A DNA stretch of 64,000 nt from Hyalangium minutum (GTDB lineage Bacteria; Myxococcota; Myxococcia; Myxococcales; Myxococcaceae). The notes below the pieces were generated by a model. It was not told where the DNA came from, did not search any database, and was given only the letters and a program-made list of their open reading frames with translations. This document shows positions 28,804-53,816 of the stretch, one piece after another (within the stretch, counting starts at the first letter, position 1; each line of letters begins with the position of its first letter). Position numbers and translations under genes: made by a program. The stretch covers positions 434,001 to 498,000 of the forward strand of contig NZ_JMCB01000005.1 of the NCBI RefSeq assembly GCF_000737315.1, in the 5' to 3' direction.

Positions 28804-29748
28804 CTACCCTGGCTTTGAACGCAGGGCCTGGTAGGCGCGCTTCCCCGCCATCACGGCCAGCAGGATGAGTGCCCCGGCAACGATTCCGGACAACGCATCC
28901 ATGATGGTCGGCACCACCGCTTGCAGGACTCCTCCCACCCCCGGCACGTTCCCCGCGCCATGGGCGATCCCCTCGATGAGGTGATGCAGGGGAGGGATGC
29001 CGTGGGTGAGGATGCCGCCGCCGACCATGAACATGGCGGCCGTGCCGGCGATGGACAGCCCCTTCATCAGGTACGGAGAGGCCACCAGGAGCCCGCGGCC
29101 CAGCGTGCGCTGGAATGAGCCCTTCTTCTGGGTGAGATAGAGCCCCGCATCGTCGAGTTTGACGATGCCAGCGACCAGCCCATAGACGCCGACCGTCATG
29201 ATGATGGCGATGCCGATCAGGACGGCGACTCGCTGCCCGAAGGTCGCGTTGACGAGCGTGCCCAGCGAGATGACGACGATCTCCGCCGAGAGGATGAAGT
29301 CCGTACGGATCGCGCCTTGGATCTTGGCCTTCTCGAAGGCAACGAGGTCCACCGCAGGGTCGGCGACGGCCTTGACGAGCTCGCCGTGGTGGGCTTCGTC
29401 CTCGGCCTTGTTGTGCAAGAACTTGTGGGCCAGTTTTTCAAAGCCTTCGAAGCAGAGGAAGGCACCGCCCACCATCAACAGCGGGATGATCGCCCAGGGA
29501 ATAAAGGTGCTGATGGCCAGGGCGGCGGGCACCAGAATGGCCTTGTTGACCAGGGAGCCCTTCGCGACCGCGAAGACGACAGGCAGCTCGCGATCGACGG
29601 TGACGCCGGCCACCTGCTGAGCATTGAGCGCGAGATCGTCACCGAGGACTCCCGCGGTCTTTTGGGTCGCGACCTTGGTCATCGCCGCGACGTCGTCCAG
29701 GAGGCTGGCGATGTCATCAATCAGGGTCAGGAGGTTGCTACCGGCCAA
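28804..29748 (-). CDS. yedI: DUF808 (YedI-like) inner-membrane protein
   Basis: MAGSNLLTLIDDIA, AGVLGDDLALNAQQV, GAIRTDFILSAEI. Confidence 0.9.
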   Translation of the reverse strand: MAGSNLLTLIDDIASLLDDVAAMTKVATQKTAGVLGDDLALNAQQVAGVTVDRELPVVFAVAKGSLVNKAILVPAALAISTFIPWAIIPLLMVGGAFLCFEGFEKLAHKFLHNKAEDEAHHGELVKAVADPAVDLVAFEKAKIQGAIRTDFILSAEIVVISLGTLVNATFGQRVAVLIGIAIIMTVGVYGLVAGIVKLDDAGLYLTQKKGSFQRTLGRGLLVASPYLMKGLSIAGTAAMFMVGGGILTHGIPPLHHLIEGIAHGAGNVPGVGGVLQAVVPTIMDALSGIVAGALILLAVMAGKRAYQALRSKPG

Positions 29749-29793: not shown

Positions 29794-31560
29794 CTACTTC
29801 AAAGCTGGCGGCAGTGCCTGTGACAGCGCCTGCTCCAGCTCGCGCCCGTGCGTGGTGTAGAGCTCCCTCCACTCAAACCCCGTGGGCAGCGTTCCTCCCT
29901 GGCCGACGAAGAGGTACACGAACAGATCCAGCAGGAGCCTTTGCGAGGACGTTCCACAGTAGCGCCCCAGGGGGTGGGGCTCTCGCCCCTCCGCTGGGAG
30001 AATCTCTCGCGCCACGCGCTCCAGCTCATCGGCGGTGTGGCGTACAGCCGAGGGAGCCGCCAGCTTGCGGCGCTCGGTAATTTCCTCGGCGAAGGGCGCG
30101 GGCAGCACGCGGCGAGCCACTTCGCGCAGCAACACCTTCCGCGTCCTCCCCCGGACGCGCTGCTCCCAGGGGAGCGAGAGCGCCAGGTCCCGGATCCTTC
30201 GATCCAGGTAGGGCACCCGCACCTCCAGGCCGCTCGCCATGGAGCCTCCATCCCAGACGCGCAGGTGCGCGTCCGTGAGCTGCCCCTCCAAGAAGAAGCG
30301 GTAGAAAGCCTCACGGGCCGCGGCTTCGTCTGGGAGGGCCACCGCCCGCAGAGCCGCCTTGGTGGAGGCGCACTCCTCCACGGGCACCGTGCCCGTCCGA
30401 ATCATCCGGTTGTAGCTCTCCACGCAGGACTTCAGCCATGGCGCGGAGCTCGCGTGGAGGACGTAGCCCGCGAAGAGCTCATCGGCCCCATCCCCGCAGA
30501 GCACCGCCTTGACGTGGTGACGGATGGCAGGAGCCGCCGTCTCCACAATGGTGGGCTCCGAGGGCCCCTCGATCGCGACGAGCGCACGCGGCAGGGACTC
30601 CAGCAGCTCGGCGGGGCGGAAGATGTACTCGTGGTGCCGCGTCCCCAGCGCCTCGGCGAGCCTCCGGCTCATGGCAAGGTCCGCCGACTCCGGATCATCC
30701 GCGAGCGAGAAGGTATGCAGCGCCGGCGAGCCCTCACGCGCCAGCAACGCGGCCAGCAGGGAGCTGTCCACGCCCCCTGAGAGAAAGAGCCCCACCGGGT
30801 GATCCGCCGCTCGCTGCCACCGTACCGAGCTCGTGAGCAGCTCGAGCAGCAACTCGGCCAGCTCCTCCTCACGCGTGGGCAGCGTGAGCGGGCGCGGCGC
30901 GCTGTGGCGGCCGGGGCGAAGCTCCAGGAGCCCATCCGGGCGGCGAGAGATCTCCAGCGTGCCACCGGGCGGCACTTGGCGAATGGCCCGGAAGAGCGTG
31001 CGCTCACCGAGCAGAAAGCGAAAGGTGGCCCACTCGAAGAGCGCCGTGCGATCGAGCTCCCGCGGCAGCGAGGGGTCCACCAGCAGCGCCTTCAGCTCCG
31101 AGGCAAACAGGAGCCGGCGGCCCCCGTCCACGAGCGCGTAGTACAGCGGCTTGATGCCGAAGGCATCCCTCGCCAGGGTGAGCCGCTCGCCGTCCGAGAG
31201 GGCGAAGGCGAACATGCCCTCCATCTCCTCCAGCCAGGCCATGCCCCGGCGCTCCAGGCCGCGCAGCACCACCTCGGTGTCGCTGCGTGTCCTCAAGGGG
31301 GGGCCCTCTCGCTCGAGCTCCCGGCGCAGCTCCACCGTGTTGTAGAGCTCGCCGTTGTAGGCGAGCGTCAACCCGGCCGGGCCGGACATGGGCTGCGCTC
31401 CCCCCTCCATGTCCACGAGGCTCAGGCGCGTGCTGCCCAGGCCCGCGTGGCCTACCACCGCCGTTCCCCATCCGTCCGGGCCCCGGTGCTCGAGCCGGCG
31501 TGTCATGCGCTCGAGCAACGCTCGATCCGGCTCACCAAAAATCCCTGCGATGCCGCACAC
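29794..31560 (-). CDS. Asparagine synthetase (AsnB)-like Gln amidotransferase, putative RiPP tailoring enzyme
   Basis: MCGIAG (catalytic Cys), HRGPDG, LSGGVDSS, GDGADELFAGY, EVRVPYLD. Confidence 0.88.
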   Translation of the reverse strand: MCGIAGIFGEPDRALLERMTRRLEHRGPDGWGTAVVGHAGLGSTRLSLVDMEGGAQPMSGPAGLTLAYNGELYNTVELRRELEREGPPLRTRSDTEVVLRGLERRGMAWLEEMEGMFAFALSDGERLTLARDAFGIKPLYYALVDGGRRLLFASELKALLVDPSLPRELDRTALFEWATFRFLLGERTLFRAIRQVPPGGTLEISRRPDGLLELRPGRHSAPRPLTLPTREEELAELLLELLTSSVRWQRAADHPVGLFLSGGVDSSLLAALLAREGSPALHTFSLADDPESADLAMSRRLAEALGTRHHEYIFRPAELLESLPRALVAIEGPSEPTIVETAAPAIRHHVKAVLCGDGADELFAGYVLHASSAPWLKSCVESYNRMIRTGTVPVEECASTKAALRAVALPDEAAAREAFYRFFLEGQLTDAHLRVWDGGSMASGLEVRVPYLDRRIRDLALSLPWEQRVRGRTRKVLLREVARRVLPAPFAEEITERRKLAAPSAVRHTADELERVAREILPAEGREPHPLGRYCGTSSQRLLLDLFVYLFVGQGGTLPTGFEWRELYTTHGRELEQALSQALPPALK

Positions 31561-31590: not shown

Positions 31591-33561
31591 TCACGCCTGG
31601 GCGGCGGGAGCGGCCTTGGGCTCGGCGAACACCACGAGCCCCTCGCCATGGAATCGCTGGAGCGCCTCCAGCACCGCCTGCTCCACCTTCTGGGCGGGCT
31701 GTTCGCTCCGGCGCCGTTGGCCCTCGAGCAGCTGCCCCACGGTGCGCTCGCCGTCGCACTGCTGGAGCAGCTCCGAAGTCCACGCGTTCACCCGGAAGTG
31801 GTGGCCGTAGAGGTTGGGCCGCTTGTGGAAGAGGACCGTGGCCTCGCCCCCCGTGCCCTGTCCACCCGAGAGCATCCCCGGCGGCAGGGAGTGGAAGCGC
31901 TCCACCCGGACCCACTGGCTGCGCAGCGGCACCAGCGCGCGCAGCGCCTCGGGCGAGCCGTTTCCTCGGAGGGCCGACCACATGTCAGGCCGCTCGAAGG
32001 CAGGCTGCGCCTCCTCCTCAGGGGTGAAGTGCCCCATCCACACCAGCAGCCCGGTATAGCGCGCTGCCTCCGCCACGGCCGGCTCCACCGCTCCTCCCTG
32101 GCCCGAGCCCACCCACTGGCAGAAGGCTGCCGCGTCCGCGAAGAACGTGGGAGGCACCTCCGGGTGCGCCGCCTGGAAGGCCTGGAGCATGGGCTCGGCA
32201 CGCGCCCCGAGCACCTCCACCAGCCCGGGCGCCGTGCGGCGCAGCGCTTCGCCCCGGTTCTCGGGCAGCCCCCGCTCGGCCGGGGACAGCCGCCCTGGCT
32301 GCCCTCGGTGCTTGGCGATGACGTCTTCGAAGAGCCGCGTGAACTCCCCCGCGACATCTCTTCGGGGCAGTCCCTGCACCAGCTCCAGTCCGCGCCGGCC
32401 GATCTCCCGAGCGCCCTCCGGATCCTCGATGGCCTGGCGCAGCGCCCGCGCCAGCTCGCTGTGCACGCGGGGATCCGGCACCAGCAGCACGTTCTTCCCG
32501 GGGGCCAGGTGTTCGCGGAAGGGCTGCTTGGCGGCAATCTCCCCGGAGAGCACCAGGCAGGTGCCGCAGGCGAGCACCTCCCGAGGCACCGTGGGCGCGT
32601 GGAAGGTGATGGGGAAGTCCCGCTCCAGGAAGCACACCGCGCGGCACGCCCGGATGAAGCGCGCCACCTTCCAGTGCGCTACGAAGGGCAGTACCCACGT
32701 CACCTCCGCGAGGCCCTGTTCCTCCACCGCCTTGTGCAGGGGCGCCACCCGCTTGCCCCGCGTGAGCGCCACGAGGTTGAAGCGCAGCCCCTCCTTGCGC
32801 AGCAGGGCCAGCGCGCTCAGCAAGTCATACGTGCCCTTGGTGACTCCCACCTTGCCGTAGATGCCAATCACCGGCAGCGAGGGATCCAACAGGCGCGGGT
32901 TCCGCACCAGCCCCGGGTGTTCCCGGTTCAGCTCCTCGAGGACGCCGTTGATGTCCAGCGGCTCCACCGTGGGGCTGAAGCACTCGCGGATCAGATCGGG
33001 CGGCGGCCCCCGGTAGATGTTGTCGGGGTGGACCCCCATGCCGAGAAACAGCAGGGGATTGCCTGCGCACACGCCGTTCGCGCGGCGGATGATCTCCCGG
33101 TACGTGGTGCCCAGGCCGGGCCGGGTCATCAGCCTTCCGAGATCGCTGCCGGCGTTGCGCACCAGGTAAGGCACTCCGGTCCAGTGCGAGGCCATGTTCG
33201 CGGCGACGCCGTACGGCTCGAAGTAGTAGCTGAAGATGACCTCGCAGCGGTGGCGGCGGACGACGTCGGTGGCGAGGCCCGCGAGCTTGCTGACGTAGGG
33301 GTTCGCCTGCGGCACGTGCAGGAAAGCGGAGGAGCTGCGCTCGGAGAGGTGCAGTCGCACCCGCCCCGCGCCGAAGGTGGGCTCCAGCCACGAGCGATCA
33401 TCGGCCGTGAGCATGAGCCGGTAGTCGTCCTCCACCTCGTCCGCGTTGGTGACGACGTGGACTTCATGGCCGGCCTCGGCCAGCGCGCGGCACATCCAGT
33501 AGGACTGGGCGCTCACGCCACCTTGAATGGGGGGGTATTTGATGAGGGCGCAGATACGCAC
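31591..33561 (-). CDS. GT4-type glycosyltransferase fused to C-terminal MNIO-partner/RRE-like module
   Basis: KYPPIQGGVS, GHEVHVVT, EVLACGTCLV; C-terminus aligns by eye with the MNIO C-terminus. Confidence 0.8.
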   Translation of the reverse strand: MRICALIKYPPIQGGVSAQSYWMCRALAEAGHEVHVVTNADEVEDDYRLMLTADDRSWLEPTFGAGRVRLHLSERSSSAFLHVPQANPYVSKLAGLATDVVRRHRCEVIFSYYFEPYGVAANMASHWTGVPYLVRNAGSDLGRLMTRPGLGTTYREIIRRANGVCAGNPLLFLGMGVHPDNIYRGPPPDLIRECFSPTVEPLDINGVLEELNREHPGLVRNPRLLDPSLPVIGIYGKVGVTKGTYDLLSALALLRKEGLRFNLVALTRGKRVAPLHKAVEEQGLAEVTWVLPFVAHWKVARFIRACRAVCFLERDFPITFHAPTVPREVLACGTCLVLSGEIAAKQPFREHLAPGKNVLLVPDPRVHSELARALRQAIEDPEGAREIGRRGLELVQGLPRRDVAGEFTRLFEDVIAKHRGQPGRLSPAERGLPENRGEALRRTAPGLVEVLGARAEPMLQAFQAAHPEVPPTFFADAAAFCQWVGSGQGGAVEPAVAEAARYTGLLVWMGHFTPEEEAQPAFERPDMWSALRGNGSPEALRALVPLRSQWVRVERFHSLPPGMLSGGQGTGGEATVLFHKRPNLYGHHFRVNAWTSELLQQCDGERTVGQLLEGQRRRSEQPAQKVEQAVLEALQRFHGEGLVVFAEPKAAPAAQA

Positions 33562-33595: not shown

Positions 33596-35356
33596 TCAGT
33601 TCGCGGGCACCGCGAGGGTGAGGGCGTTGAGCTCCATCAGGCGGCGGACCACCTCGGCGCAGCTCCGGACTTCCTGGGCGCTCGCCTCGCCCGCCGCGCC
33701 GGGTGAGAGCCGTGCGGCGATCTCCGCCGTGGTGCGGCTCCCGTCACACAGCGCGAGCAGGGCGCTCGTCCGCTCGTTGATGGCCAGGTGGCGCACGTTG
33801 CGGAAGCCGGGCGCCTTGCTGAAGAGCACGAGCGAGGGCTTGAGCGGAACCTCCTCCGTGGCCTCGCCCGCGTTGAGGCGCCGCACGAGCTCCACCACAT
33901 CGCAGCCGAACCGCTCCACGCGCACGTGGGGCCCGGAGAGGGGACGCGCGGCCGCCAGCTCTTCGACCCCTGGGGCAGCGCGGCTCTCGAAGGCGCGGCG
34001 GAACTCCAGGGCCGTCTCCACCGGAGCCACCGTCGAGCACAGCTCGAGCTGGACACGCTCGAATCGGAGGATGTCCTCCAGCGGGAAGCGCAGCTCGGGC
34101 CGCTCCTCCAACACGCGGGAGAGCAACTGGAGAAACCAGAAGCCGTCTCGCACGGTGCGGTTGACGAACTCGGGGGAATGGCGAGGGGCGTGCTCCTCGG
34201 TGAAGCGATGCGAGACGTCGTGCCAGAGCTTGTGCAGCTGCAGCCATCGGCAGCTCGCCGGAGCGGCCTTGGTGATCAGCGAGAGCCGCTTGCTGGAGAG
34301 ATCATGCGCGAAGGTGTTCAGGTGCCCTGCCCCCACCGCGAGCAGCGCCTCCACCTGCTCTGGCCCCAAGCCCAGCTCCTCTCCCACGGCAGGGGGCGCG
34401 GCGAAGAACCGCTTGCGCAGTCCGTCCTCCACCAGCAGCCGGGCCAGCGCCGTCTGGAAGACGTGCGCGTCCGTGGGCAGCGGCGTGGAGGGGCGCTCGG
34501 GCCAGGCCGGGAGCGTGCTCCGGTGGGGCGGCCGGGGAGCCGCGCGGTGCGCACGGTGGAGAATCTCCTTGGCCCGATCGATGTCCTCGAGCATCTCCTG
34601 GAACTCCTCGGGGAAGTTCTGGTCCCGCTCGATCAGGACGGCACGGACCTGGCTGCGCTCGGCCACATACTCCAGCAGCTTCCACACCTCCGGGTGCGAG
34701 TCCACGCGCTGGCTGTGGCTGTCAATCCACTGGCCACCCCGCCGCTCGCCTCCCGCCAGGTGCACCTGGACGACCCGCTCCAGCGGCAGCGCGTCCAGGA
34801 AGGCGTACGGATCGTACCGGTGGTTCTGCGAGTTGATGAAGACGTTGGCCAGATCCAGCAGCAGGCCGCAGTCCGCCTCCGTCAGCACCCGGGTGATGAA
34901 CTCCGCCTCGCCCAGCGGGCTGGGGATGGCGAACGCATAGGTGATGTTCTCCAGCAGGAAGGGCACACCGAGGATCTCCTGGACCCGGCGCGCATTGGCG
35001 GCGCATCTGCGGATCGCGGCCTCGGTGAACGGCAGCGGGGTGAGCTGGCCCAGCTCCACGTCCCCCGCCCTCGTCATGCACAGGTGGTCGCTGGAGAAGG
35101 GCGCTCGGACGGCCCGCACCAGCTCGGCCACCTCCTGGCAATACGCCTCATCCAGCGGCGCATCCGTGCCGACGGACGTCTCCAGTGCGTGGGGGATGAG
35201 CGGATGACGCTCCAGCAACGGCAGCGCTCGCTCCATGCTCTCGGGCACGGAGCGCACGTATCTGTCGGCGATCAGCTCGAACCAGTCGATGCGATCGCCG
35301 TGCTTCAGCTGCTGCTCGCGCAGCTCGGGCCGGTAGCCAATACCGACCCCGAGCAT
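33596..35356 (-). CDS. DUF692 multinuclear non-heme iron oxidase (MNIO) fused to partner/RRE-like module
   Basis: GVGIGYR, WFELIADRY, PHAL, SDHLC, LLENI, LLLDLANVFIN, QVHLAGG, IDSH, IERD; ~300-aa C-terminal extension; alternative start GTG 35419. Confidence 0.92.
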   Translation of the reverse strand: MLGVGIGYRPELREQQLKHGDRIDWFELIADRYVRSVPESMERALPLLERHPLIPHALETSVGTDAPLDEAYCQEVAELVRAVRAPFSSDHLCMTRAGDVELGQLTPLPFTEAAIRRCAANARRVQEILGVPFLLENITYAFAIPSPLGEAEFITRVLTEADCGLLLDLANVFINSQNHRYDPYAFLDALPLERVVQVHLAGGERRGGQWIDSHSQRVDSHPEVWKLLEYVAERSQVRAVLIERDQNFPEEFQEMLEDIDRAKEILHRAHRAAPRPPHRSTLPAWPERPSTPLPTDAHVFQTALARLLVEDGLRKRFFAAPPAVGEELGLGPEQVEALLAVGAGHLNTFAHDLSSKRLSLITKAAPASCRWLQLHKLWHDVSHRFTEEHAPRHSPEFVNRTVRDGFWFLQLLSRVLEERPELRFPLEDILRFERVQLELCSTVAPVETALEFRRAFESRAAPGVEELAAARPLSGPHVRVERFGCDVVELVRRLNAGEATEEVPLKPSLVLFSKAPGFRNVRHLAINERTSALLALCDGSRTTAEIAARLSPGAAGEASAQEVRSCAEVVRRLMELNALTLAVPAN

Positions 35357-35406
35357 CGGCAGCTCATCCCATCTCGACAAGGGCTCTCCCGGGTACGCGC
35401 GAGCAC

Positions 35407-35471: not shown

Positions 35472-35666
35472 TCAGGCGCTCTGGCTGACACAGCCACAGA
35501 GGCAGCCGGTGCCGCACACACAGCTGATGCACATGCTGCCCGCGTCCGTGAACGAATACGCGGGACCACAGTCCAGCATCTCCAGCTTGAACTCTTCGGT
35601 CTCCAGCGGCTTGGCGTCGGGGGCAATGAACTTCGCGTTCTGGAGGGGCGCGCTGGGGTTTTCCAT
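35472..35666 (-). CDS. Cys-rich RiPP precursor peptide (64 aa)
   Basis: GAGGA RBS; MENPSAPLQNAKFIAPDAKPLETEEFKLEMLDCGPAYSFTDAGSMCISCVCGTGCLCGCVSQSA; directly upstream of the MNIO. Confidence 0.88.
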   Translation of the reverse strand: MENPSAPLQNAKFIAPDAKPLETEEFKLEMLDCGPAYSFTDAGSMCISCVCGTGCLCGCVSQSA

Positions 35667-35736
35667 TTTTTCCTCAGAAGTCCTAGGGGGAAGGACTGAG
35701 ATTTTTACTCTGCGTGGACTTCCTGTCAATGCGCTT

Positions 35737-36921
35737 TCACCCAGGTTTCTCCTCCGGTGCCCCCATCCGGGCGCCCGTGAGGCAAGCCACGGCCGTCCCC
35801 ACGCCATCGCGAGGCGTCAGGACGGCGGCGAGCGCACGGGCCTGGTGCCGCAGGCGCTCGTCCGTCAGCGCCTGTTGTATCGAGGCGATCAGCTGAGGGG
35901 CCTTCACGCCTCGTGCAAAGAAGGGGGCCGGAGCGATGCCCAGGCGGTAGGCGCGCTCGGCCCAGAAAGGCTGATCATACGCATGGGGCACGAGGACCTG
36001 GGGGACGCCCGCACGCGCGGCCGCCGCGAAGGTCCCCGCCCCGCCATGGTGCACCACCGCCGCGACGCGAGCGAAGAGCGGGCGATGCGCGGCATGGCCA
36101 ATGCGAAGGAGGGGGCCCTCCACCTGAGGACGAGCGGGAGCGTTCCGCCCCGCATGGAAGACAGCGCGGCACCCCACGGCCTCCACCACCTCGCGCAGGA
36201 GCTGCTCGTTGAGCGCTGGCTCGCTCCCGGCGAGGCTGCCAAAGCCGATGTAGATCGGGGGCTCGCCGGCTGCCAGGAACGCCTCCAGCTCGTCCTCGAG
36301 TGGGCGGGGATCCTCGAGCAGCAGTGCTCCCGTAGGAGGCGCCCACACCTGCACGCCCCCCAGCGAGCCCAGGAGCTCCTCATCCGCGGCGAGCAGGACC
36401 CGCTCCGGAGGAAAGGCGTAGGCGAGCAGATCCTCCACGGGCGGTAGCCCACGCCGGGCGTGGAAGTCCCGCACCGTCTGGAGCAAGACCGGGGGCACGA
36501 AGATGGAGGTGCGCCCGCGGGGCATGAAGAGCCCCGGCGCGTAGACGACCGCCAGGTAGGGCGCGCCCACCGCCGCCGCCGCGGAACGAACCGCCATCGC
36601 CATTCCCGCGCCGAGCACGAAATCCACCCCCTCCGCGAGCGCGGGCAGACACTCGAGCTGAGCCCGACACTCCTGATCGAGGAAGGCCTCGATGGTGCCC
36701 GGAGGCAGGTAGCCCGGGGCGCCCCCGGCCCGCCCGCGAAGGAACTCCTCCACATCCTGTCCCATCGGCACGAAGGGCACCTGAAAGGCGGCGGCATCGG
36801 AGGCGTAGAGCGGCCGCGCCGCGAGGATGGCCTCGTGCCCCGCCGAGCGCAGGCCCAGGGCGAGGGCCAGCATGGGCTGGAAATCTCCACGAGAGCCAGG
36901 AGCTGCGAGCAGGAACTTCAC
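35737..36921 (-). CDS. GT1-family glycosyltransferase (GtfB/sterol glycosyltransferase-like)
   Basis: GGAGG RBS then GTG 36921; GSRGDFQPM, IYIGFGS, VVHHGGAGT, YDQPFWA. Confidence 0.88.
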   Translation of the reverse strand: MKFLLAAPGSRGDFQPMLALALGLRSAGHEAILAARPLYASDAAAFQVPFVPMGQDVEEFLRGRAGGAPGYLPPGTIEAFLDQECRAQLECLPALAEGVDFVLGAGMAMAVRSAAAAVGAPYLAVVYAPGLFMPRGRTSIFVPPVLLQTVRDFHARRGLPPVEDLLAYAFPPERVLLAADEELLGSLGGVQVWAPPTGALLLEDPRPLEDELEAFLAAGEPPIYIGFGSLAGSEPALNEQLLREVVEAVGCRAVFHAGRNAPARPQVEGPLLRIGHAAHRPLFARVAAVVHHGGAGTFAAAARAGVPQVLVPHAYDQPFWAERAYRLGIAPAPFFARGVKAPQLIASIQQALTDERLRHQARALAAVLTPRDGVGTAVACLTGARMGAPEEKPG

Positions 36922-36974
36922 GGCGTCCTCCCTGGCCGGCTGGACACGGGGCGCATCCGCGACGGCCTTTTGCG

Positions 36975-37028
36975 GTGACATGTCACACGCGCAGGTTGCC
37001 ATGTCACCCGTCCAGGATGGCATGTCAG
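36975..37028. promoter_or_regulatory. Three CATGTCA direct repeats with 21-bp period; the first lies in a GTGACATGTCAC palindrome
   Basis: Copies at 36979, 37000 and 37021, upstream of the GT1 start. Confidence 0.65.
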
Positions 37029-37203
37029 CCGTGGGATATCGTGGACGCTTTGAGCGCACAGCGGCGTGGCGCAGGGCGTGGGAGGCTACGGCAGGCAGCC
37101 CACGCCACGGTCATACGTGTGCTTCTGGCAGGACACTCCGATGTCCGTATGGAGGGCAGAAAAGGAGCGGAAAATTCGGGTCAAACACTTCCTCGCGAGT
37201 TGC

Positions 37204-40970: not shown

Positions 40971-41079
40971 TTTTCTGCCGTGCCCGTTGACCCGATCATT
41001 CTGCTGCCTCCTTCCTTTCCTGAAAACACAGGACGCGCCTGCACGCAGGCGCTGGGCACGAAGGCCCAAGGAGGAAGCC

Positions 41080-47980: not shown

Positions 47981-48104
47981 ATCAAGGCGGAAGCAAAACC
48001 CCAAGCAGGTCGCGCTGTTACCGGCTAACGCCTTGATCTCTCATCGGTTCGTTCTGCCGTCCCATCCCGTTTCGTTCCGTCTCGTCCCGTTCTCACCCCC
48101 GCTG

Positions 48105-48127
48105 GAGGGGCACACTGGGGGCACATG
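48105..48127 (+). repeat. Putative integrase arm-binding tandem GGGCACA site (left)
   Basis: gaggggcacactgggggcacatg; 22/23 identical to 62816-62838. Confidence 0.65.
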
Positions 48128-48351
48128 CGGGTCCCTCTCCGCTCACCGAGTGCTGTCGAGAGAGCATCTGGGATACCCACCAACTGAGGCCTCCCTCTAG
48201 CCGTGGTAGCATTGGGTACATGGCTTCACTCCTCATTGAAGAGCGATGGCGCGAGCTACTCCGGGAAATCCGTCTCGGGGCCCCTCCCCACGATATGAGG
48301 CTCTACGTGAAGCCCGGGCATGGGTGCGCGGACGAGGTCGTTCGTGACTTC

Positions 48352-48455
48352 CTTTCGGACGATCTAGGCGAGCGAGGCGGCGCAATAGGCGGCGTTTCTC
48401 GGGCGCATCATTCAAATTGGGCGGCACTGTGTTTGCCCCAGGAGCGCTCTGCTCA
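48352..48455 (-). pseudogene. Remnant of XRE regulator C-terminus
   Basis: EQSAPGANTVPPNLNDAPEKRRLLRRLARLD vs EQSAPGANTVPPGLSDTPEKRRLLRLLARLD at 55574-55674. Confidence 0.7.
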
Positions 48456-48519
48456 GAGCCTGCCTCAAGAAACCAGCTACGCAAGCCCACCTTCAACGTC
48501 ACTGCTGAGTCGCCAGCAC

Positions 48520-49065
48520 TCACTCGATCGACGTTCGACAAGCCCCAAGCAGTACCAACTTGGCCTTCAGCAGATGGACTAGTTCACCGGCGCTTCCGAT
48601 GCCGAGCAGTTCCCGTCGAGTAAGGACGATAACCGAGATACCCCGATCAAGGGCGTTCGCGATTCGTTCGTGAGCGTTTCGCAGTTCATGCGCCTTGCCA
48701 CTGATACCGGATGCTGCAACCAAGAATCCAACGGGGCAACCACGGTTCCTAAGTTTTGCGACAAAGACATCTATCTCATTGCTGCCGACAGGTTGATCCC
48801 AGTTCTTGCACTCTGCGATCAGGACGTTTGGGAGGAACTCCAATCCTTCATCCAAGCGGTCATTCCACATTGTTACGTCTATCTCTTGCGAGACTTGGTG
48901 GTTTGTCGAGTTCCGCCTCATCAACTTTTGCGGAACTCCCTTCACCTTTGAGAACATAAAGACCACAATCTCTTCGAGGACGATTCCTTTGGCGTCGGCC
49001 GTTTTCGCCTTGTCGCCCTTCTTAAACAAGGCCGCAACCTTCGCGCGCAGAGCAGAGGTCGGCAT
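48520..49065 (-). CDS. Mrr-like PD-(D/E)XK restriction endonuclease domain protein
   Basis: QEIDV..IAECKNW..PVGSNEIDVFVAKL..GFLVAASGIS; TAATG coupling with upstream gene. Confidence 0.8.
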   Translation of the reverse strand: MPTSALRAKVAALFKKGDKAKTADAKGIVLEEIVVFMFSKVKGVPQKLMRRNSTNHQVSQEIDVTMWNDRLDEGLEFLPNVLIAECKNWDQPVGSNEIDVFVAKLRNRGCPVGFLVAASGISGKAHELRNAHERIANALDRGISVIVLTRRELLGIGSAGELVHLLKAKLVLLGACRTSIE

Positions 49066-49955
49066 TATCGGTGCCCGTGAGCTGCGGCGTTGCGGAGTTG
49101 GATGAGAGTCTCAAGTAGCGTTCCAGACCGAACTAACTTCACGAGGTCGTCGAATGAGAGAGTTACCGAGATTGGCAGGTGAGCAGTAACCTCCGGAACT
49201 ACGTCGGGCATTGACGGATAGTAGACGAGTAACCCCGACCCGAGAGGTCGCCGAGCCAGCAGGAGCATCATCTGATGCTGCGCAGCGACAAGGTCGTCAC
49301 GCGTCGTGACCCGTTTCACTTCGACTAGAATTGGATTACCAAGGATCGACTGTGTCGCGTCGAACCAAGCCGCCAAGTCAATGTCGAGATCCCCATCTCG
49401 GGCCTGGCGCTGGACCATAGACGCACCCGCCTTACGCAGTAGTGCCTCTATAGCCTCCTCAACACGACTACCTTCTACTGCATCGCCTCGGGCGAGCGCG
49501 GTTACGATCCGCTCGGCTTCAGGGACCGAGCCGCCCTTCGGCTTCAGGCGACGCTGAGGCGCATCCTTACGAGTACGTCGCCGTGAGAGTGCGTTGTGCA
49601 ACTTCCACTCGAGGGTCTCCTCCTCGCCCTTCTGCAGGGCGATCAGGACCTCACCCTGTGCAACGAGGGGCACCGTGACTCGATCGTTCGCGGCAACCAG
49701 CACCACAGGTTTTTTGAGGGCTTTCGCAGCCCCGACCGCGTACCACAGAGCGGGCGGCTCCCCATCCTTGGAGACGTACGCGCAAACCGCGTCAGCACCA
49801 GCAATGGCCTGCATTAGCTCGACGGGGAACGGGGCTGCCACATGTGGAGACTCCCAGGTCACCTCGAACCCTGCTTTGCGCAGCCCCTCCACTAGTTCCG
49901 GTGGCGGTTCCGCCCCGCTTGATAGGAAGCACCGCTGAGGTCGTCTATTGCGCAA
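49065..49955 (-). CDS. TIR/nucleoside-deoxyribosyltransferase-like domain fused to PD-(D/E)XK-like domain
   Basis: GGAGG RBS then TTG 49955; CFLSS..AIAGADAVCAYVS..WYAVGAAKALKKPVVLV; DIDLAAW..GNPILVEVK. Confidence 0.6.
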   Translation of the reverse strand: MRNRRPQRCFLSSGAEPPPELVEGLRKAGFEVTWESPHVAAPFPVELMQAIAGADAVCAYVSKDGEPPALWYAVGAAKALKKPVVLVAANDRVTVPLVAQGEVLIALQKGEEETLEWKLHNALSRRRTRKDAPQRRLKPKGGSVPEAERIVTALARGDAVEGSRVEEAIEALLRKAGASMVQRQARDGDLDIDLAAWFDATQSILGNPILVEVKRVTTRDDLVAAQHQMMLLLARRPLGSGLLVYYPSMPDVVPEVTAHLPISVTLSFDDLVKLVRSGTLLETLIQLRNAAAHGHR

Positions 49956-50097
49956 ATTGGCCTCCAGTGAATCTATCCGTGTGGCTGCTTTCCGGCGGCT
50001 CGGAGGCGCGGTGGTACATGGCAACGAAGTCAAGCATGGGCGAACCCTACGCCCCCTGCGCGGCGGTTCGTGCTGGTGAAGCGAGAGGAGTGGGAAC

Positions 50098-51975
50098 TCA
50101 TCGACCACTCCCGATGCTAGGGAAGAGGCCATAGCGGCCCGCGTCCGACTTCGAGAAGTGATGATGCACGACGCCCCGCGAGAGGTCCGGGGGCGGCTCT
50201 TGGTTCTCGAGGACAATCACCTGCCCTGGACACAGATCTCCCGCGAGAGCACGGTAGAAAGCCTCCCTCACGCCGGCCTGCCGGAACCGGGCGCCGTCGG
50301 TGCCGGGCGAATCCGGATCCTTGTACGCCACCAGTGGTGAATCAAGAACGACCAGTCCCGGATGAGCGCGGCCACTCCGAGCGCAGTGACGCAAAATGCC
50401 TGTGATGAACGCTGCGCACGTCAACGCGCGAACGCCCTTGCCGTGTGAGGCCCGGTCCTGACCACCGATCACTAGGTCCTGCGCATCCTCAGAGAAGACT
50501 ACGCGTCCCGCTTCTGGGTAATTCCATGCAGAGAGAACTTGCTGGACATTGAGAGCAAAGGCTTCCATCTCCGATGTGCTGACCTTCGGCATTTCCAGCG
50601 TTGATGCTGCTCGCGTTCGCTTGGCCGCTGCTTCTGCGGTGGCCCGTCGCTTCCCAAGTTCGTCCAAGTGCTCGACGAGTGTGCGTGCGCGCAAGAGAAG
50701 ATCTCGGCGGGAATCCTGTTCCTTCATCTTCTCCGCAGAAGTTCGTGTTCGCGGCGCCAACTCCGTATCGATGCGCGATTGGAGAGCCCCCAGTTCGCTG
50801 CGGACACGCGTGCGAACCCCAGCCTTCTCCTCGTGCTCCACTCGGAGCTCATTGAGGACATCTTGAAGATCAGTACGGAGGCGTGCAGTCTTCTGGCGTT
50901 CCAGCGCCGCAGCGGACCGTACGCGCTCAAGACCAAAATGGTCGGCTGCGTCACTGGGCCGGTGAGCGGTCGGATCGGCACCGCATACAGGGCACGCCTT
51001 CGCAGGCATCTGCTCAAGCATCGAGCCTGTCTCCTGAATGGCCTCGAGCCGAGCTATGTCCATCTCATAGTGGCGGTCGAGCAGCTCGAAGCGCGCGATG
51101 AGCCCTTCGACGACAGTGATGCGAGATTCGGCCTCCCTGAGCGCGCGCCCAAGTTCGGCCCGCTCGCGCTCACGAGACACGAGCTCCACACGAGACGCTT
51201 CGTACTCCTTGAGGAGCTCTCTACGGGTGGCGTCGATGCGTTGCGTCTCTTCTTGGACAACCTCGGGTTGCACGCCGAGGCCGACGATCTCACTCCGCAC
51301 TTGCTCTTCCAGTTGGGCGAGCAATTCGGACTGCGCCTTGGCTGCTTTGGACGTCGTCTTCTTCGGGACGGCGATCGGCTCTGCCGACGGATGCCCCGTG
51401 ATTACTAGCCGGAGTACGTCGCCCTCGGCTGTTGCCTCTACTGGGCTCCCCGAGAGGTGCGGCGGCAACTCAGCGATGATGCGCGTCTCGTCGACGACAG
51501 CGAGGAATGCGATGTCACGGAAGCTCAGGGTTCGTGTCTCGCCCTTCTTGTTCTTCCGCACCTTCGTCGGCGTAAAGCCCGAGAGCGAGAGCAGGAAGGC
51601 CGACAGCGTCCGGTCGCTGTCAGCGCTGTGCTTGGCAGCGAGAAGTTGTTCGCTCTCGGTAGTCCCGTCCGCCCGGAGCAGGCGAACGATGGCGTCGCCT
51701 CCAGTGAGGCTGCGCTCGACTTGGTGACGGCGCTTCGATCCTCGTTCCTGCAGGACGACGAGAACGCGCTCGTAACCGGCCGCCGCTTGAATCTTCCTAG
51801 GCGGCTTCGACGCACCGAACGCAAAGTCAATCAGCTCGCCAAGAAACGACTTGCCGGTATCGGATGCGCCTTCGACAACGTTCAGCCCATCACGAAACAA
51901 GAGGTCGGCGTCGGGAAGACCTGTCCCCTTGACGGTGATGCGCTCGATGAAGAAGCCGCGCTCGTAGACGGTCAT
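50098..51975 (-). CDS. lmuB: ABC-three-component (Lamassu LmuB-like) SMC-type ATPase
   Basis: Walker A GASDTGKS, coiled coils, CPVC hook, SHGKG signature, VVLDSP; ATGA coupling. Confidence 0.82.
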   Translation of the reverse strand: MTVYERGFFIERITVKGTGLPDADLLFRDGLNVVEGASDTGKSFLGELIDFAFGASKPPRKIQAAAGYERVLVVLQERGSKRRHQVERSLTGGDAIVRLLRADGTTESEQLLAAKHSADSDRTLSAFLLSLSGFTPTKVRKNKKGETRTLSFRDIAFLAVVDETRIIAELPPHLSGSPVEATAEGDVLRLVITGHPSAEPIAVPKKTTSKAAKAQSELLAQLEEQVRSEIVGLGVQPEVVQEETQRIDATRRELLKEYEASRVELVSRERERAELGRALREAESRITVVEGLIARFELLDRHYEMDIARLEAIQETGSMLEQMPAKACPVCGADPTAHRPSDAADHFGLERVRSAAALERQKTARLRTDLQDVLNELRVEHEEKAGVRTRVRSELGALQSRIDTELAPRTRTSAEKMKEQDSRRDLLLRARTLVEHLDELGKRRATAEAAAKRTRAASTLEMPKVSTSEMEAFALNVQQVLSAWNYPEAGRVVFSEDAQDLVIGGQDRASHGKGVRALTCAAFITGILRHCARSGRAHPGLVVLDSPLVAYKDPDSPGTDGARFRQAGVREAFYRALAGDLCPGQVIVLENQEPPPDLSRGVVHHHFSKSDAGRYGLFPSIGSGR

Positions 51976-52457
51976 ACAACTTCGCTTTCCGGCAGCAGAT
52001 CCACGAATTCTGTCCGCCACCGCGACAGACTCGCTTCAAGAGTCTGGTGAAGCTCCCCGGCTTCAAGGAGCGCAAAGCTTGCGATGACCCACTCGGCACG
52101 TACGCGCAGGCGCTCGACATAGCCGGAGCGAAGGGCATCGAGGAAGGCACCTGCGCCGCTCTCTGCAGAGTAGGCGAATCCTGTCTCCACCAGGCTCTGC
52201 TGAACCAAGCCGCGGAACTTGTATAAACTCAAGCCCTCCTCGATGAGTGCTCGGCGAACGGCCACCTCACCGGAGCGGAGCGGGCTCGGCGGATGCAGAC
52301 TTTCGGGTCCACCGTCGATGTCTCCTGAGTGAACGAGGAAGTAGTCGAGCGTGACCAGTTGCTGGAGGTCGAGCGAATGCGGAGACGACTCTAGCAGCAA
52401 CACGAGTGCGCGGAGTCCTACCTCCACCGGGCCATTGAGGACGCGTGCAGAACTCAT
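51972..52457 (-). CDS. lmuC: ABC-three-component middle component (LmuC-like)
   Basis: NGPVEVGLRALVLL, LDYFLVHSGD, SLHPPSPLR.GE; ATGA overlaps on both sides. Confidence 0.78.
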   Translation of the reverse strand: MSSARVLNGPVEVGLRALVLLLESSPHSLDLQQLVTLDYFLVHSGDIDGGPESLHPPSPLRSGEVAVRRALIEEGLSLYKFRGLVQQSLVETGFAYSAESGAGAFLDALRSGYVERLRVRAEWVIASFALLEAGELHQTLEASLSRWRTEFVDLLPESEVV

Positions 52458-53533
52458 CGACGCCACCTCAATCGCAGATCGTTGGCGAGTTGGTGGCACA
52501 TCCCGCCTCGGTCGGAGGTTCGCGTGCGCGTAATAAGCGCGTTGGAAGTGATCTGGAGTCCCTTGGCGTGCTGCACGACGGCGAGCACGCGCGCCACCGC
52601 GTCTGTGTGGCCTGCCTGTTCGACGTCCACTACGCCGCTGTGAATCTCGTCGAGAAGGTCCTCGAACGTGCCGTGCGGAACGTTGTCGCGAGAGAACTCT
52701 CGAAGGGACTCCGCGCTATAGAACTCCCTGCGCGACCGAAAGAAGTGATCTCCCAACTCCTGATGGACGAGGTCCGTCGGCGAAGTCAGCGTCACACCGA
52801 GCCGGTGCTCATACGCATCAAGCAATGCGCGGACGTAGTTCGTTTCGTGCGAGCCAACGCCCGTGGGCGGCGCGGGCGGCGCGCCGCGCTCCGGCAACCC
52901 GCCGCCAAAACGAGCGACGTACCAAGGCGTCTTGCGGTGTTCTTCGATCAGCGTCAGTGGCGAAACCGCTGTCACGATGCTGAAGTTGAAGCCGTCGATG
53001 TGCCTCTTCAGACCGTCATCGAGCACGATCTCGCGGGTCGAGGTGATCTTCGTTCGACAGTGCTTGTCCCACGCATCGAGCAGGCCAGCACGAACTTCTT
53101 CCGGCTTGCGCAGCAGCTTCGAGAGCATGTTCCCTGCTCCTTGCGGAGCCACGAAACGGTAGCTCCTCGGCACGGAGTACTCACCGCTGAACGTGTAGAA
53201 AACCAGCTTACCGAGCTCGATCCAGACATCACTCGGAGCAAGCGCATGGTCGTAGTGCTTGCACTGGTAGTTGTCCCAAGGATCGTCGGCGGTCGCAGAC
53301 TCGAAAGCGATGACGTCGAGTCCCAGGTCGCCGCTGCTGGCGTGCTTCTCGACACGGGCGTACTTCTTCTTCAGCGAATGAACCCACTCAAGGACGAGGT
53401 CTTCCCAAGTCGCGGCCGACATGTGCCGGAGTCGCTCAAGCGGTGGCACAACGGGGCCCGCAGCCGCCACGTCCGGGCTGAGGGTAGACGCGGAAGGCGT
53501 GAGATTCGGTAGGGGCTTGGTCTTCAGCGCCAC
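52454..53533 (-). CDS. lmuA: ABC-three-component effector (LmuA-like): nuclease-like N-terminus plus CTD
   Basis: AAGGAG RBS then GTG; GDLGLDV..YQCKHY; C-terminal DRGGMCHQLAND. Confidence 0.8.
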   Translation of the reverse strand: MALKTKPLPNLTPSASTLSPDVAAAGPVVPPLERLRHMSAATWEDLVLEWVHSLKKKYARVEKHASSGDLGLDVIAFESATADDPWDNYQCKHYDHALAPSDVWIELGKLVFYTFSGEYSVPRSYRFVAPQGAGNMLSKLLRKPEEVRAGLLDAWDKHCRTKITSTREIVLDDGLKRHIDGFNFSIVTAVSPLTLIEEHRKTPWYVARFGGGLPERGAPPAPPTGVGSHETNYVRALLDAYEHRLGVTLTSPTDLVHQELGDHFFRSRREFYSAESLREFSRDNVPHGTFEDLLDEIHSGVVDVEQAGHTDAVARVLAVVQHAKGLQITSNALITRTRTSDRGGMCHQLANDLRLRWRR

Positions 53534-53624
53534 GGCAAGACTCCTTGACGAGCATCCATCGCGTGCTGCAGTCGCATGCAATGAAGATGCTCGGACCACG
53601 ACATAGCCTTGGCGCACGACGACA

Positions 53625-53813
53625 TCATCCCCGGCCTCCGCACGGTTTCAGGCTTACGCCGTCCGACAACCTCAACTCGCGCAGGGCCATCTTCGTTTCC
53701 CCGGCCTTCGACATCGTCGTGCCGCCGGGAGGCTCGACGTCTACCGTCGCGGTGAGCTTCAGGCCGCCGATGGTCGCGAAGCGCGAAAGGACCTTCTTGT
53801 AGAATTTCATCCA
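53625..53813 (-). pseudogene. C-terminal remnant of a DUF499-like AAA protein
   Basis: WMKFYKKVLSRFATIGGLKLTATVDVEPPGG..ETKMALREL resembles the DUF499 C-terminus as recalled; cut at the IS91 remnant. Confidence 0.5.
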
Positions 53814-53816
53814 CTT

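Follow-up and report, generated by a model that had tools for sequence, protein, structure and literature searches.

A short open reading frame on the minus strand of Hyalangium minutum DNA is confirmed as a real, conserved gene, and it probably encodes the precursor of a leader-dependent RiPP, the cysteines of which would be oxidised by an MNIO before the peptide is glycosylated and amidated, a chemistry that we infer. In the window, i.e., the whole stretch of 64,000 nucleotides that was analysed, the gene lies 91 nt upstream of the gene for a fused MNIO, and each of the 14 related loci for which DNA context was recovered, in Myxococcota and an Acidobacteriota MAG, has a homologous peptide gene directly adjoining the orthologous fused MNIO. 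An MNIO-associated RiPP precursor, as proposed in the earlier note, is thus supported: rather than a lack of conservation beside orthologous MNIOs, the opposite was found at each of these loci.

A short gene conserved beside MNIO genes

The precursor gene, its parts and the signals around it are as follows.

35472..35666, minus strand: precursor peptide gene, 64 aa plus stop codon, by translation
35556..35603, minus strand: predicted leader recognition motif, residues E22-Y37 (ETEEFKLEMLDCGPAY), by the family pattern
35490..35531, minus strand: core, residues C46-C59 (CISCVCGTGCLCGC), by the family motif
35672..35675, minus strand: ribosome-binding site GAGG, 5 nt 5' of the ATG at 35666, read from the sequence
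35679..35697, minus strand: inverted repeat AGTCCTTCCCCCTAGGACT, lying within the predicted 5' UTR, 3' of the -10 element and 5' of the ribosome-binding site
35701..35729, minus strand: predicted sigma-70-like promoter TTGACA-17 nt-AAAAAT, 5' of the precursor gene, by consensus match only

The minus-strand location corrects the earlier note. Translation of 35472..35666 gives MENPSAPLQNAKFIAPDAKPLETEEFKLEMLDCGPAYSFTDAGSMCISCVCGTGCLCGCVSQSA followed by a stop codon and includes the motif LETEEFKLEMLD; as had been read before, there are cysteines at positions 33, 46, 49, 51, 55, 57 and 59, seven Ser/Thr beyond residue 33 (38, 40, 44, 48, 53, 61 and 63) and no His. The N-terminus contains no hydrophobic stretch (highest 11-residue Kyte-Doolittle mean 0.41 over the first 30 windows), and the precursor is, judged by its sequence, without a signal peptide, in line with the earlier reading of no Sec signal. 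The window holds a single copy, with no further one found, and an Rfam scan of its full length at gathering thresholds gave zero matches. The gene had been described as easily missed, which is partly true: the source collection lists the ORF as a called gene, and gene callers pick up its homologues in related genomes, but under the label "hypothetical", and the precursor matches neither Pfam nor NCBIfam models.

Because the gene lies in GC-rich DNA between two real genes, it might be suspected to be a chance ORF, the more so as three other frames of the window also reach 6 Cys per 14 residues. At least that density occurs in 4 of the 702 stop-to-stop frames of at least 50 aa, the other three being out-of-frame Arg/Ser/Pro junk; in DNA of 67% GC, with four frames equally dense, we rejected Cys density as stand-alone evidence. 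The precursor is nevertheless placed above chance by its GC3, by synonymous change, by its homologues and by its kept position beside orthologous MNIO genes. GC3 is 0.846 in the precursor frame and in that frame only, the two other ORFs overlapping the locus having 0.547 and 0.556 and the neighbouring genes 0.81-0.90. Over the 31 codons that align with the Corallococcus exercitus orthologue, 8 changes are synonymous and 5 non-synonymous, i.e., there is conservation at the protein level alongside synonymous change, and homologues, which number 38 and occupy the same genomic position, match at E 1e-13 to 1e-21. A ribosome-binding site and a promoter-like site are also present. Given the conservation data, we regard the chance origin as already refuted and give it almost no credence.

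The GAGG agrees with the strong RBS noted before. The promoter fits 10 of 12 consensus positions and is the sole promoter-like site in 28.5-38.5 kb (shuffled mean, 0.4 sites); TTGAC elements also occur 5' of the precursor in loci L081, L082, L084 and L086, at differing distances, and the upstream regions of the related loci fail to align in a check of promoter conservation. The inverted repeat was also flagged by a terminator scan, on the opposite strand. A hairpin in the 91-nt spacer between precursor and MNIO was rejected as an attenuator, its stability being similar to that of shuffled sequence (z = -0.32). We likewise rejected a longer, 111-aa form of the precursor (start 35807), which is unlikely because it runs into the GT1 gene and the promoter and because homologues begin M-[E/D/N]-N; its additional N-terminus is not conserved.

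Leader and core of the precursor family

The precursor family is rare (24 clusters in 1.84 billion representative proteins) and comprises 38 distinct homologues of 48-74 aa. Its most conserved part is the local stretch EEFKLEMLD-x-G-x-x-Y, which commonly takes the form F-x-L-E-M-L-D-x-G-x-x-Y. The pattern F-x-[LFIM]-[EKD]-[MLIV]-x-D-x-G-x-x-Y is kept in 35 of the 38 sequences, with the motif residues invariant among the close homologue set, which bears out the leader-like stretch seen earlier.

In the core, the family conserves the cysteines at 46, 49, 51, 55 and 57 together with two Cys-Gly dyads, and at least two such dyads are found in 35 of the 38 precursors. The strict motif C..C.CG.GC.CG[CST] occurs in 26 members and a loose one in 33. 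Of the core motif first drawn, the cysteines from C46 to C57 stand; Cys33 falls into the leader, at a hydrophobic position that is C, F, L or M in relatives, and position 59 is Cys, Ser or Thr across the family and not a fixed Cys. Three homologues terminate exactly at CGS. Apart from position 59, none of the Ser/Thr candidates is invariant in the 38 members, and across the related loci the presence of GT1 shows no correlation with the identity of residue 59 (Cys versus Ser/Thr).

The conserved gene cluster

The following genes adjoin the precursor or its neighbours.

33596..35380, minus strand: MNIO fused to a partner protein, 594 aa if the TTG at 35380 is the start; Pfam PF05114, E 2.7e-78
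31591..33561, minus strand: GT4 glycosyltransferase of 656 aa with a fused helical-plus-RRE module, predicted to bind the leader; Pfam Glycos_transf_1, Glyco_trans_4_4 and PqqD
29794..31560, minus strand: glutamine-dependent asparagine-synthetase-like (AsnS-like) amidotransferase, 588 aa; Pfam GATase_7 and Asn_synthase
28804..29748, minus strand: DUF808 membrane protein, 45 nt 3' of the amidotransferase; Pfam DUF808, E 9e-112
35737..37059, minus strand: accessory GT1-family (EryCIII/MGT-like) glycosyltransferase; Pfam EryCIII-like_C and Glyco_transf_28

Besides precursor and MNIO, the GT4-RRE and the AsnS-like amidotransferase are present in all 13 loci long enough to show them, the amidotransferase gene lying directly 3' of that for the GT4-RRE in 13 related loci. 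In the window the precursor heads this small operon, and the same order (precursor, fused MNIO, GT4-RRE, AsnS-like) is kept in Corallococcus, Stigmatella, Myxococcus, Sorangium, Kofleriaceae, Plesiocystis and metagenomic contigs; in the Acidobacteriota MAG the precursor heads a GT4-RRE/AsnS operon that is divergent from the MNIO. Neither a protease, exporter or metal-related gene nor an immunity gene is conserved in the cluster across the related loci. The window and loci L001, L082, L083, L084, L085 and L086 carry the GT1 gene 5' of the precursor, and L081, L087, L088, L008, L009 and L075 lack it; since GT1 homologues are 378-387 aa long, its true start is probably internal, near 36921. The DUF808 gene may be co-transcribed with the cluster. 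It was not found beside the cluster in other related loci, and we rejected it as a dedicated exporter because it is not kept there.

A literature search (MNIO with glycosyltransferase, asparagine synthase or Myxococcota genera, and GT4 with RRE) returned no description of the cluster, although coverage of subscription journals was thin and a prior description is possible. The enzyme combination of MNIO, GT4 and amidotransferase is undescribed in the searchable literature.

The fused MNIO and its partner module

In the AF2 model (pLDDT 87), the fused protein consists of a TIM-barrel MNIO (~1-280), a helical domain (~306-477) and an RRE (~480-589); the ORF lister extends it to a GTG at 35419 (607 aa). 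Residues H64, H99, E144, D176, N179, H207, D220, H222 and E251 (594-aa numbering) are invariant in an alignment of 13 family sequences, and the MNIO motifs PH, DH, EN, D..N, H.AG, D.H and ERD align with those of MbnB, TglH and 3BWW; the role of these residues as ligands is one that we assume from the MbnB and TglH structures. With its metal-ligand motifs conserved, the MNIO looks functional. NCBIfam models score it at 205.7 bits for HvfB (cut-off 360), 204.3 for BufB (310), 115 for ApyH, 56 for ChrH and 38.2 for MbnB/TIGR04159 (325), i.e., below the cut-off of every curated named family, and against the sequences of solved structures it reaches 147 bits with 3BWW, 96 with TglH and 51 with MbnB. 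By sequence, the MNIO domain thus appears closest to the 5-thiooxazole-forming group of BufB, HvfB and 3BWW, at scores under the curated cut-offs.

For the partner module, NCBIfam matches of the C-terminal half are to ApyI (E 1.2e-8) and HvfC (E 0.003), the latter pointing only to remote homology; Pfam was negative for DUF2063 (PF09836) up to E 5, and hhalign comparison with modules bearing DUF2063 in fused MNIOs was weak (probability 0.2-49%). In Foldseek searches with the model of the fused protein, TglH (2.9e-17) and 3BWW (4.5e-17) were level, and a match at E 8e-7 was to the second chain (269 residues) in the entry for the TglHI holoenzyme, which chain we take to be TglI, with a TM-score of 0.64.

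MNIOs of similar fold catalyse widely differing reactions. A real RiPP precursor could meet another MNIO reaction at its cysteines, namely TglH-like carbon excision, ChrH-like thioether/imidazolidinedione macrocyclisation or a new C-x-C cross-link, and the product, a rigid polycyclic glycopeptide, would then serve as an antibiotic or signal and not as a metal binder. This would agree with scores under all curated family cut-offs, with the level Foldseek results and with a partner module that resembles TglI and not a Pfam-recognisable DUF2063; moreover, accessory enzymes such as these (two glycosyltransferases, one amidotransferase) typically belong to pathways for bioactive natural products, antibiotics are made in abundance by the host phylum, and the cluster stands near PKS or ACP genes in two loci. 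We nonetheless hold it to be unlikely, as the BufB/HvfB/3BWW group is clearly nearer by sequence than TglH, ChrH or MbnB, the cluster has no conserved immunity or exporter gene, and the Cys-Gly dyads match the known preference of 5-thiooxazole-forming MNIOs for a small residue, above all Gly, following the target Cys (PMC13097082).

The glycosyltransferases and the amidotransferase

The GT4-RRE model (pLDDT 92) shows a GT-B fold (1-420), helices (436-541) and an RRE (544-646), with BshA and MshA as best Foldseek matches. The last 220 aa of the enzyme share homology with the partner module of the MNIO (hhalign 99.5%, E 2e-23, 211 columns), and GT4-RRE co-occurs with the fused MNIO across four phyla. 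The family-invariant residues K8-Y-P-P-I-x-G-G, G236-K237, K242-G243, E313 and E328 presumably occupy the expected donor-binding/catalytic motif positions, an assignment of motifs that is our own reading.

The amidotransferase scores 365 bits with TIGR01536, the model for Gln-hydrolysing AsnB, over the cut-off of 267, and keeps the N-terminal MCGIAG with its Cys2 nucleophile and the SGGVDSS PP-loop; its best solved relative is 7YLZ, a hydroxyamidotransferase. We rejected a lasso peptide reading, because the cyclase model gives 147 bits (cut-off 525), TIGR01536 is passed and the Cys2 nucleophile is kept; lasso clusters have a B1/B2 protease and leader-binding pair, and no transglutaminase-like protease gene was found in the cluster. 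AsnS-like enzymes acting on RiPP carboxylates have been described, i.e., TsrC, ScdTA and PesC (PMC13060819).

The GT4 and AsnS-like enzymes also bear on the possibility that the peptide is an unmodified metallothionein-like or Fe-S/Zn-binding small protein while its neighbours act elsewhere, e.g., on polysaccharide. The two are commonly paired in exopolysaccharide loci, the AsnS-like protein reaches 291 bits on the XrtA/PEP-CTERM amidotransferase model (under its cut-off), and the peptide has 5-7 Cys per 14 residues; the term "metallothionein-like" in the earlier note, however, describes the composition of the precursor only. We consider an unmodified peptide very improbable. The MNIO and the GT4 each bear a peptide-binding RRE module, the two modules share homology, and the peptide gene is kept beside the enzymes across phyla, including the rearranged locus in which it heads the GT4/AsnS operon. 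Moreover, conservation is as strong in the N-terminal motif as in the Cys core, a pattern that fits a leader but would be unexpected in a metallothionein.

Comparison with known systems

Captophorins (bufferins, oxazolin/HvfA and fontiphorin) are metallophores with 5-thiooxazoles, formed by MNIOs of the BufB/HvfB/FonB type that work with DUF2063-RRE partners. The system described here shares with them a Cys-rich precursor with small residues (Gly) after Cys, an MNIO domain that scores best with this group, if under its cut-offs, and an RRE-bearing partner module, but it has a conserved leader of cytoplasmic type instead of a Sec signal peptide. Hence, with neither a signal peptide nor a Pfam/NCBIfam match, the distinction drawn earlier from signal-peptide-bearing bufferin/oxazolin precursors holds. 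Further, the partner is fused to the MNIO and lacks a Pfam DUF2063, whereas captophorins have a separate DUF2063 plus RRE protein, PME1; EGKCG, Lys-Cys and DUF2282 motifs are missing from the precursor, in which no Lys adjoins Cys and there are no repeats; the cluster additionally encodes a GT4-RRE glycosyltransferase and an AsnS-like amidotransferase; and the hosts are mainly Myxococcota and Acidobacteriota, as opposed to Pseudomonadota. No DoxX or DUF2282 genes occur among the Pfam-annotated neighbours of the related loci.

Methanobactins (MbnA/MbnB/MbnC) resemble the system in their short, leader-bearing precursor without signal peptide, in a C-terminal core with Cys followed by small residues and in the pairing of an MNIO with a partner; their product binds metal, as ours may. 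The separation from MbnA made in the earlier note is sustained, since the MNIO is not of the MbnB family (38.2 bits against a cut-off of 325), and we take the leader and core motifs to be unrelated to those of MbnA. Unlike in methanobactin clusters, glycosyltransferase and amidotransferase genes are present, and methanobactin transport/accessory genes were not found among the Pfam-annotated neighbours of the related loci.

As TglH and the presumed TglI chain can both be superposed on the fused protein in its AF2 model, the fusion seems to mimic the TglHI heterodimer of the 3-thiaglutamate (pearlin) pathway. TglA has a single C-terminal Cys, which is added by a peptide-aminoacyl-tRNA ligase; here, by contrast, a multi-Cys core is genetically encoded, TglH is more distant by sequence than 3BWW, and no such ligase occurs among the annotated neighbours.

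As in glycocins and other glycosylated RiPPs (sublancin SunS, thurandacin ThuS, NAI-112 and cacaoidin), a peptide glycosyltransferase stands beside a Cys-containing precursor, and by this analogy S- or O-glycosylation of Cys/Ser/Thr would be the obvious expectation. To our knowledge, the known S-glycosyltransferases are inverting GT2 enzymes of GT-A fold, and we know of no earlier GT-B/GT4 peptide (possibly S-) glycosyltransferase in RiPP biosynthesis. Unlike the SunS/ThuS-type GT2 enzymes of glycocins, those encoded here are a GT4 (retaining GT-B, BshA/MshA-like) on an RRE module and a GT1 (EryCIII-like). A survey of RRE proteins lists fusions to PF00535 (GT2) but not to GT4 (PMC12710340). 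The nitrilobacillin (pes) clusters likewise join an MNIO plus partner to an AsnS-like enzyme (PMC13060819), but in the pes system the precursors are not rich in Cys, the MNIO acts as an Asp hydroxylase, and the distribution is limited to Bacillus-related genera.

Proposed pathway

For the leader-dependent RiPP that we favour, we propose that residues 1 to ~40 form the leader, in which the stretch E-x-F-x-L-E-M-L-D-x-G-x-x-Y would be bound by the two helical-plus-RRE modules, on the MNIO and on the GT4, and that the substrate is the C-terminal core C-x2-C-x-C-G-x-G-C-x-C-G-[C/S/T]. The fused MNIO would oxidise core cysteines with O2, its likeliest targets being the two Cys-Gly dyads, which may be converted to 5-thiooxazoles (or oxazolone/thioamides). 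The GT4, a retaining enzyme with the GT-B fold of BshA/MshA type, would add a sugar, likely at the always-nucleophilic position 59 or else at another Cys/Ser/Thr, and in the subclade with GT1 this leaderless enzyme may add or extend the sugar. The glutamine-dependent AsnS-like enzyme could then amidate a carboxylate, either that of the C-terminus or that of a uronic-acid sugar. The product would be a glycosylated peptide with sulfur heterocycles, most plausibly metal-binding. As the precursor lacks a signal peptide and the cluster has neither a conserved protease nor a conserved exporter, the peptide is expected to mature in the cytoplasm.

We put forward more tentatively, as a possibility to which we give slightly less than even weight, that the cluster represents a new RiPP class, in which one duplicated leader-binding module serves, by fusion, both the MNIO and the retaining GT4, two unrelated enzymes, and in which a glycosylated, amidated product with several MNIO-made sulfur heterocycles matures in the cytoplasm. 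The GT4 would then be the first GT-B/GT4 RiPP peptide glycosyltransferase, and the product the first glycosylated MNIO product, known to us.

Significance

MNIO enzymes are under intense mining, and each new subfamily has so far given unusual peptide chemistry. The cluster joins an MNIO to two enzyme types that are unlinked to MNIO products in the literature searched, i.e., an RRE-bearing GT4 and a glutamine-dependent amidotransferase, on a Cys-rich core. It is a compact system of four genes (precursor, fused MNIO, GT4-RRE and AsnS-like), directly testable and with natural variants in several phyla. The common leader-binding module on two catalysts clearly illustrates the recruitment of new tailoring enzymes by RiPP pathways, and might be put to use in engineering. 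Should the product prove to be a glycosylated peptide with thiooxazoles, the range of metal-binding chemistry of the captophorin/methanobactin type would come to include peptides of Myxococcota and Acidobacteriota that depend on a leader and not on Sec.

The Precursor Gene and Its Cluster

A conserved leader-plus-core peptide is tightly linked to a fused MNIO (an MNIO domain joined to a TglI-like partner/RRE module), to a GT4 glycosyltransferase with a homologous module (GT4-RRE) and to a glutamine-dependent amidotransferase (AsnS-like). The neighbourhood reads as follows:

35737 to about 36921-37059, minus strand: GT1-family glycosyltransferase
35729..35701, minus strand: sigma-70-like promoter match TTGACA-17-AAAAAT, just upstream of the precursor gene
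35679-35697, minus strand: 19-nt inverted repeat AGTCCTTCCCCCTAGGACT, separating the predicted -10 element from the precursor RBS
35472..35666, minus strand: precursor gene, between the GT1 and fused MNIO genes
33596..35380, minus strand: fused MNIO, 594-607 aa (PF05114, E 2.7e-78)
31591..33561, minus strand: GT4 glycosyltransferase, 656 aa, PqqD/RRE match at the C-terminus
29794..31560, minus strand: asparagine synthase plus glutaminase domain, 588 aa
minus strand, last in the listed neighbourhood: DUF808 gene

The translated precursor, MENPSAPLQNAKFIAPDAKPLETEEFKLEMLDCGPAYSFTDAGSMCISCVCGTGCLCGCVSQSA*, has Cys at positions 33, 46, 49, 51, 55, 57 and 59, seven Ser/Thr after residue 33, no His and no hydrophobic stretch at its N-terminus, and its RBS (GAGG) lies 5 nt from the ATG; all the sequence features listed in the earlier note were present. 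The promoter match is the only sigma-70-like one across 28.5-38.5 kb, and the inverted repeat may serve as an operator or form a hairpin in the 5' UTR. The gene is single-copy in the window, and no Pfam or NCBIfam model matched its product.

Cysteine density alone was rejected as evidence for a gene, as six Cys within 14 residues are reached by 4 of the 702 window frames of at least 50 aa, the precursor included; the remaining three are spurious out-of-frame readings of the sort that 67% GC DNA typically yields. We consider the precursor a real gene because of its GC3 (0.846, against 0.547 and 0.556 in two further ORFs that overlap it and 0.81-0.90 in the neighbouring genes), its codon changes relative to the Corallococcus orthologue (8 synonymous, 5 non-synonymous) and its strong conservation, which effectively excludes a spurious ORF.

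Searching 5.8 billion proteins by word index returned five homologues beyond the window's own product, among them a Stigmatella sp. protein already annotated as hypothetical, which partly corrects the earlier view of the peptide as easily missed. A profile search of all 1.84 billion cluster representatives gave 24 clusters at E <=0.001, with members of 48-74 aa. Database homologues and peptides read from fetched loci together made 38 distinct sequences, whose common layout is a variable N-terminus followed by the leader motif, a variable linker of 8-13 residues and then the core. Of the 38, 35 carry the leader motif F-x-[LFIM]-[EKD]-[MLIV]-x-D-x-G-x-x-Y, 26 the strict and 33 the loose form of the core C-x2-C-x-C-G-x-G-C-x-C-G-[C/S/T], and 35 at least two Cys-Gly dyads; three peptides terminate exactly at CGS. 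Residue 33 varies among C, F, L and M in relatives, which makes it a hydrophobic position of the leader and no site of modification, so that Cys33 drops out of the cysteines singled out earlier; the listing of Cys59 is corrected too, its position holding Cys, Ser or Thr in every member keeping the strict core.

The core set of four genes recurs in Corallococcus exercitus, Stigmatella sp., Myxococcus sp., Sorangium sp., Plesiocystis pacifica, a Kofleriaceae MAG and five metagenomic contigs. It is also found in an Acidobacteriota MAG, where the precursor comes first in a GT4-RRE/AsnS operon divergent from the MNIO; by this rearrangement, the link of the peptide with the glycosyltransferase is as firm as its link with the MNIO. 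Such conservation supports the interpretation, proposed by a model from sequence alone, of an MNIO-associated RiPP precursor. The GT1 is accessory (7 of 14 loci, window counted), methyltransferases, a flavoenzyme, ABC transporters and peptidases are sporadic, and no protease or exporter is conserved among the precursor loci.

Enzymes of the Cluster

The fused MNIO looks functional by sequence, its MNIO domain retaining the conserved metal-ligand motifs. It scores 206 bits with the NCBIfam model HvfB, 204 with BufB, 115 with ApyH, 56 with ChrH and 38 with MbnB, under the curated cut-off in every case; against sequences of solved structures it scores 147 bits with 3BWW, 96 with TglH and 51 with MbnB. 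The C-terminal half gives weak matches to the partner models ApyI and HvfC, and a confident AF2 model (pLDDT 87) gives it a helical domain and an RRE. In Foldseek, the model superposes on TglH and on the 269-residue second chain of the TglHI entry (E 8e-7, TM-score 0.64 for the latter), which we take to be TglI; the fused protein is therefore a covalent version of an MNIO-partner heterodimer.

The AF2 model of GT4-RRE (pLDDT 92) comprises a GT-B fold (1-420), a helical domain (436-541) and an RRE (544-646), its nearest structures being the retaining UDP-GlcNAc enzymes BshA and MshA. Full-length homologues number in the hundreds (959 proteins at E <=1e-10), and residues at the expected donor-binding and catalytic motif positions, assigned by our own reading, are invariant across 43 homologues. 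The C-terminal 220 residues align with the fused-MNIO partner module over 211 columns (hhalign probability 99.5%, E 2e-23), with common motifs including VERF and IN..T..LL..CDG.RT. By this comparison, a homologous, predicted leader-binding module (helical domain plus RRE) is duplicated onto two different catalysts. A role for the precursor as an unmodified metallothionein is effectively ruled out by the RRE modules on the enzymes, together with the conservation of the peptide.

The AsnS-like protein lies above the TIGR01536 cut-off, retains the Cys2 nucleophile (MCGIAG) and the SGGVDSS PP-loop, and best matches, among solved relatives, the hydroxyamidotransferase 7YLZ. Its assignment as a lasso cyclase was rejected (the score of 147 bits is under the cut-off of 525). 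In two metagenomic loci, L083 (5908-7658) and L084 (9797-11547), the gene call is split into two overlapping parts, GATase apart from synthase, reflecting either a frameshift/assembly error or a genuine split.

Proposed Maturation and Known Systems

We propose that both RRE modules would bind the precursor stretch F-x-L-E-M-L-D-x-G-x-x-Y and that the MNIO, with O2, would oxidise core Cys. The most probable targets would be the invariant dyads C51-G52 and C57-G58, which may be converted to 5-thiooxazoles, because the nearest characterised MNIO relatives form these and favour Gly after Cys (PMC13097082). The main alternative keeps the architecture and assumes that the MNIO catalyses something else (excision, macrocyclisation or a new cross-link), which would lead to a rigid glycopeptide antibiotic. 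The GT4 would glycosylate a nucleophile, position 59, always C/S/T under the strict motif, being the best candidate, and in the window's subclade the GT1 might add or extend a sugar. The amidotransferase may amidate the C-terminal carboxylate, as do TsrC, ScdTA and PesC (PMC13060819), or alternatively a uronic-acid sugar.

The closest in their way of working are the captophorin/bufferin and methanobactin systems, with a Cys-rich precursor and an MNIO plus partner as here. However, the precursor has neither a signal peptide nor the captophorin DUF2282/EGKCG/Cys-Lys type, Pfam does not recognise the captophorin partner domain DUF2063 in the fused MNIO, and the latter, though nearest by sequence to the captophorin MNIOs HvfB and BufB, falls below their cut-offs; for methanobactin, its MbnB score is 38 against a cut-off of 325. 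Glycocins employ a GT2 enzyme, whereas the precursor cluster has a GT4 and is not of glycocin identity; nor is it of the lasso kind. The MNIO landscape paper makes no mention of glycosyltransferases, asparagine synthases or Myxococcota (PMC12452194), and a survey of RREs lists fusions of the domain to GT2 (PF00535), not GT4 (PMC12710340). The cluster is undescribed in the searchable literature on MNIOs with glycosyltransferases, a scope that leaves out most subscription journals and so gives no proof. New is the combination of a fused MNIO-partner, a GT4 with the same binding module and a true amidotransferase.

Other Features of the Window

Positions 48000-56000 have a GC content of 0.59-0.63 (0.66-0.71 elsewhere) and few high-GC3 ORFs, and are probably a horizontally acquired defence island. 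We also noted a 552-aa ORF (43731-45389, minus strand) with good coding statistics (GC3 0.86) and no Pfam matches; the kinases and the PI-PLC-X-domain protein are typical for a myxobacterial genome.

40987-42582, plus strand: PI-PLC-X-domain protein
49065..50216, minus strand: Mrr_cat nuclease (weak match), near the CTD6 protein gene
50098..52020, minus strand: AAA_23 ATPase (weak match), adjoining the CTD6 protein gene
52454..53617, minus strand: CTD6 domain protein of ABC-three-component (ABC-3C) conflict systems (E 6e-38)
56135-57376 and 57667-59649, minus strand: two Ser/Thr protein kinases of eukaryotic type

A Wider Group of Fused MNIOs

Fused MNIOs that are more distantly related, some accompanied by GT4-RRE and some not, adjoin other short peptides in Sorangium, Terriglobales, Acidobacteriaceae and Nonomuraea; these peptides combine an F-x-F-E-hydrophobic leader with C-terminal cores such as HCHCCGCGC, HHCCHCCHH, KCYCHCHC and ACCYGSCC. 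In the recovered loci (L002, L003 and L007 from Sorangium, L011 and L023 from Acidobacteriota, L058 from Nonomuraea) the peptide genes sit just upstream of MNIO or GT4-RRE genes, and the Cys/His-rich C-termini are HCHCCGCGCVNDE, CCRCCYGRVSDE, HHCCHCCHH, KCYCHCHCERPN, CNCGCIACGTGHTCSCVTSQCYG and ACCYGSCC. The precursor belongs to a branch of MNIO-dependent RiPPs that is rare and apparently undescribed. Since distant fused MNIOs adjoin other Cys-rich peptides, its family is a single branch within a wider group that targets Cys, likely a larger, uncharted superfamily of fused MNIO-partner genes and short peptides.
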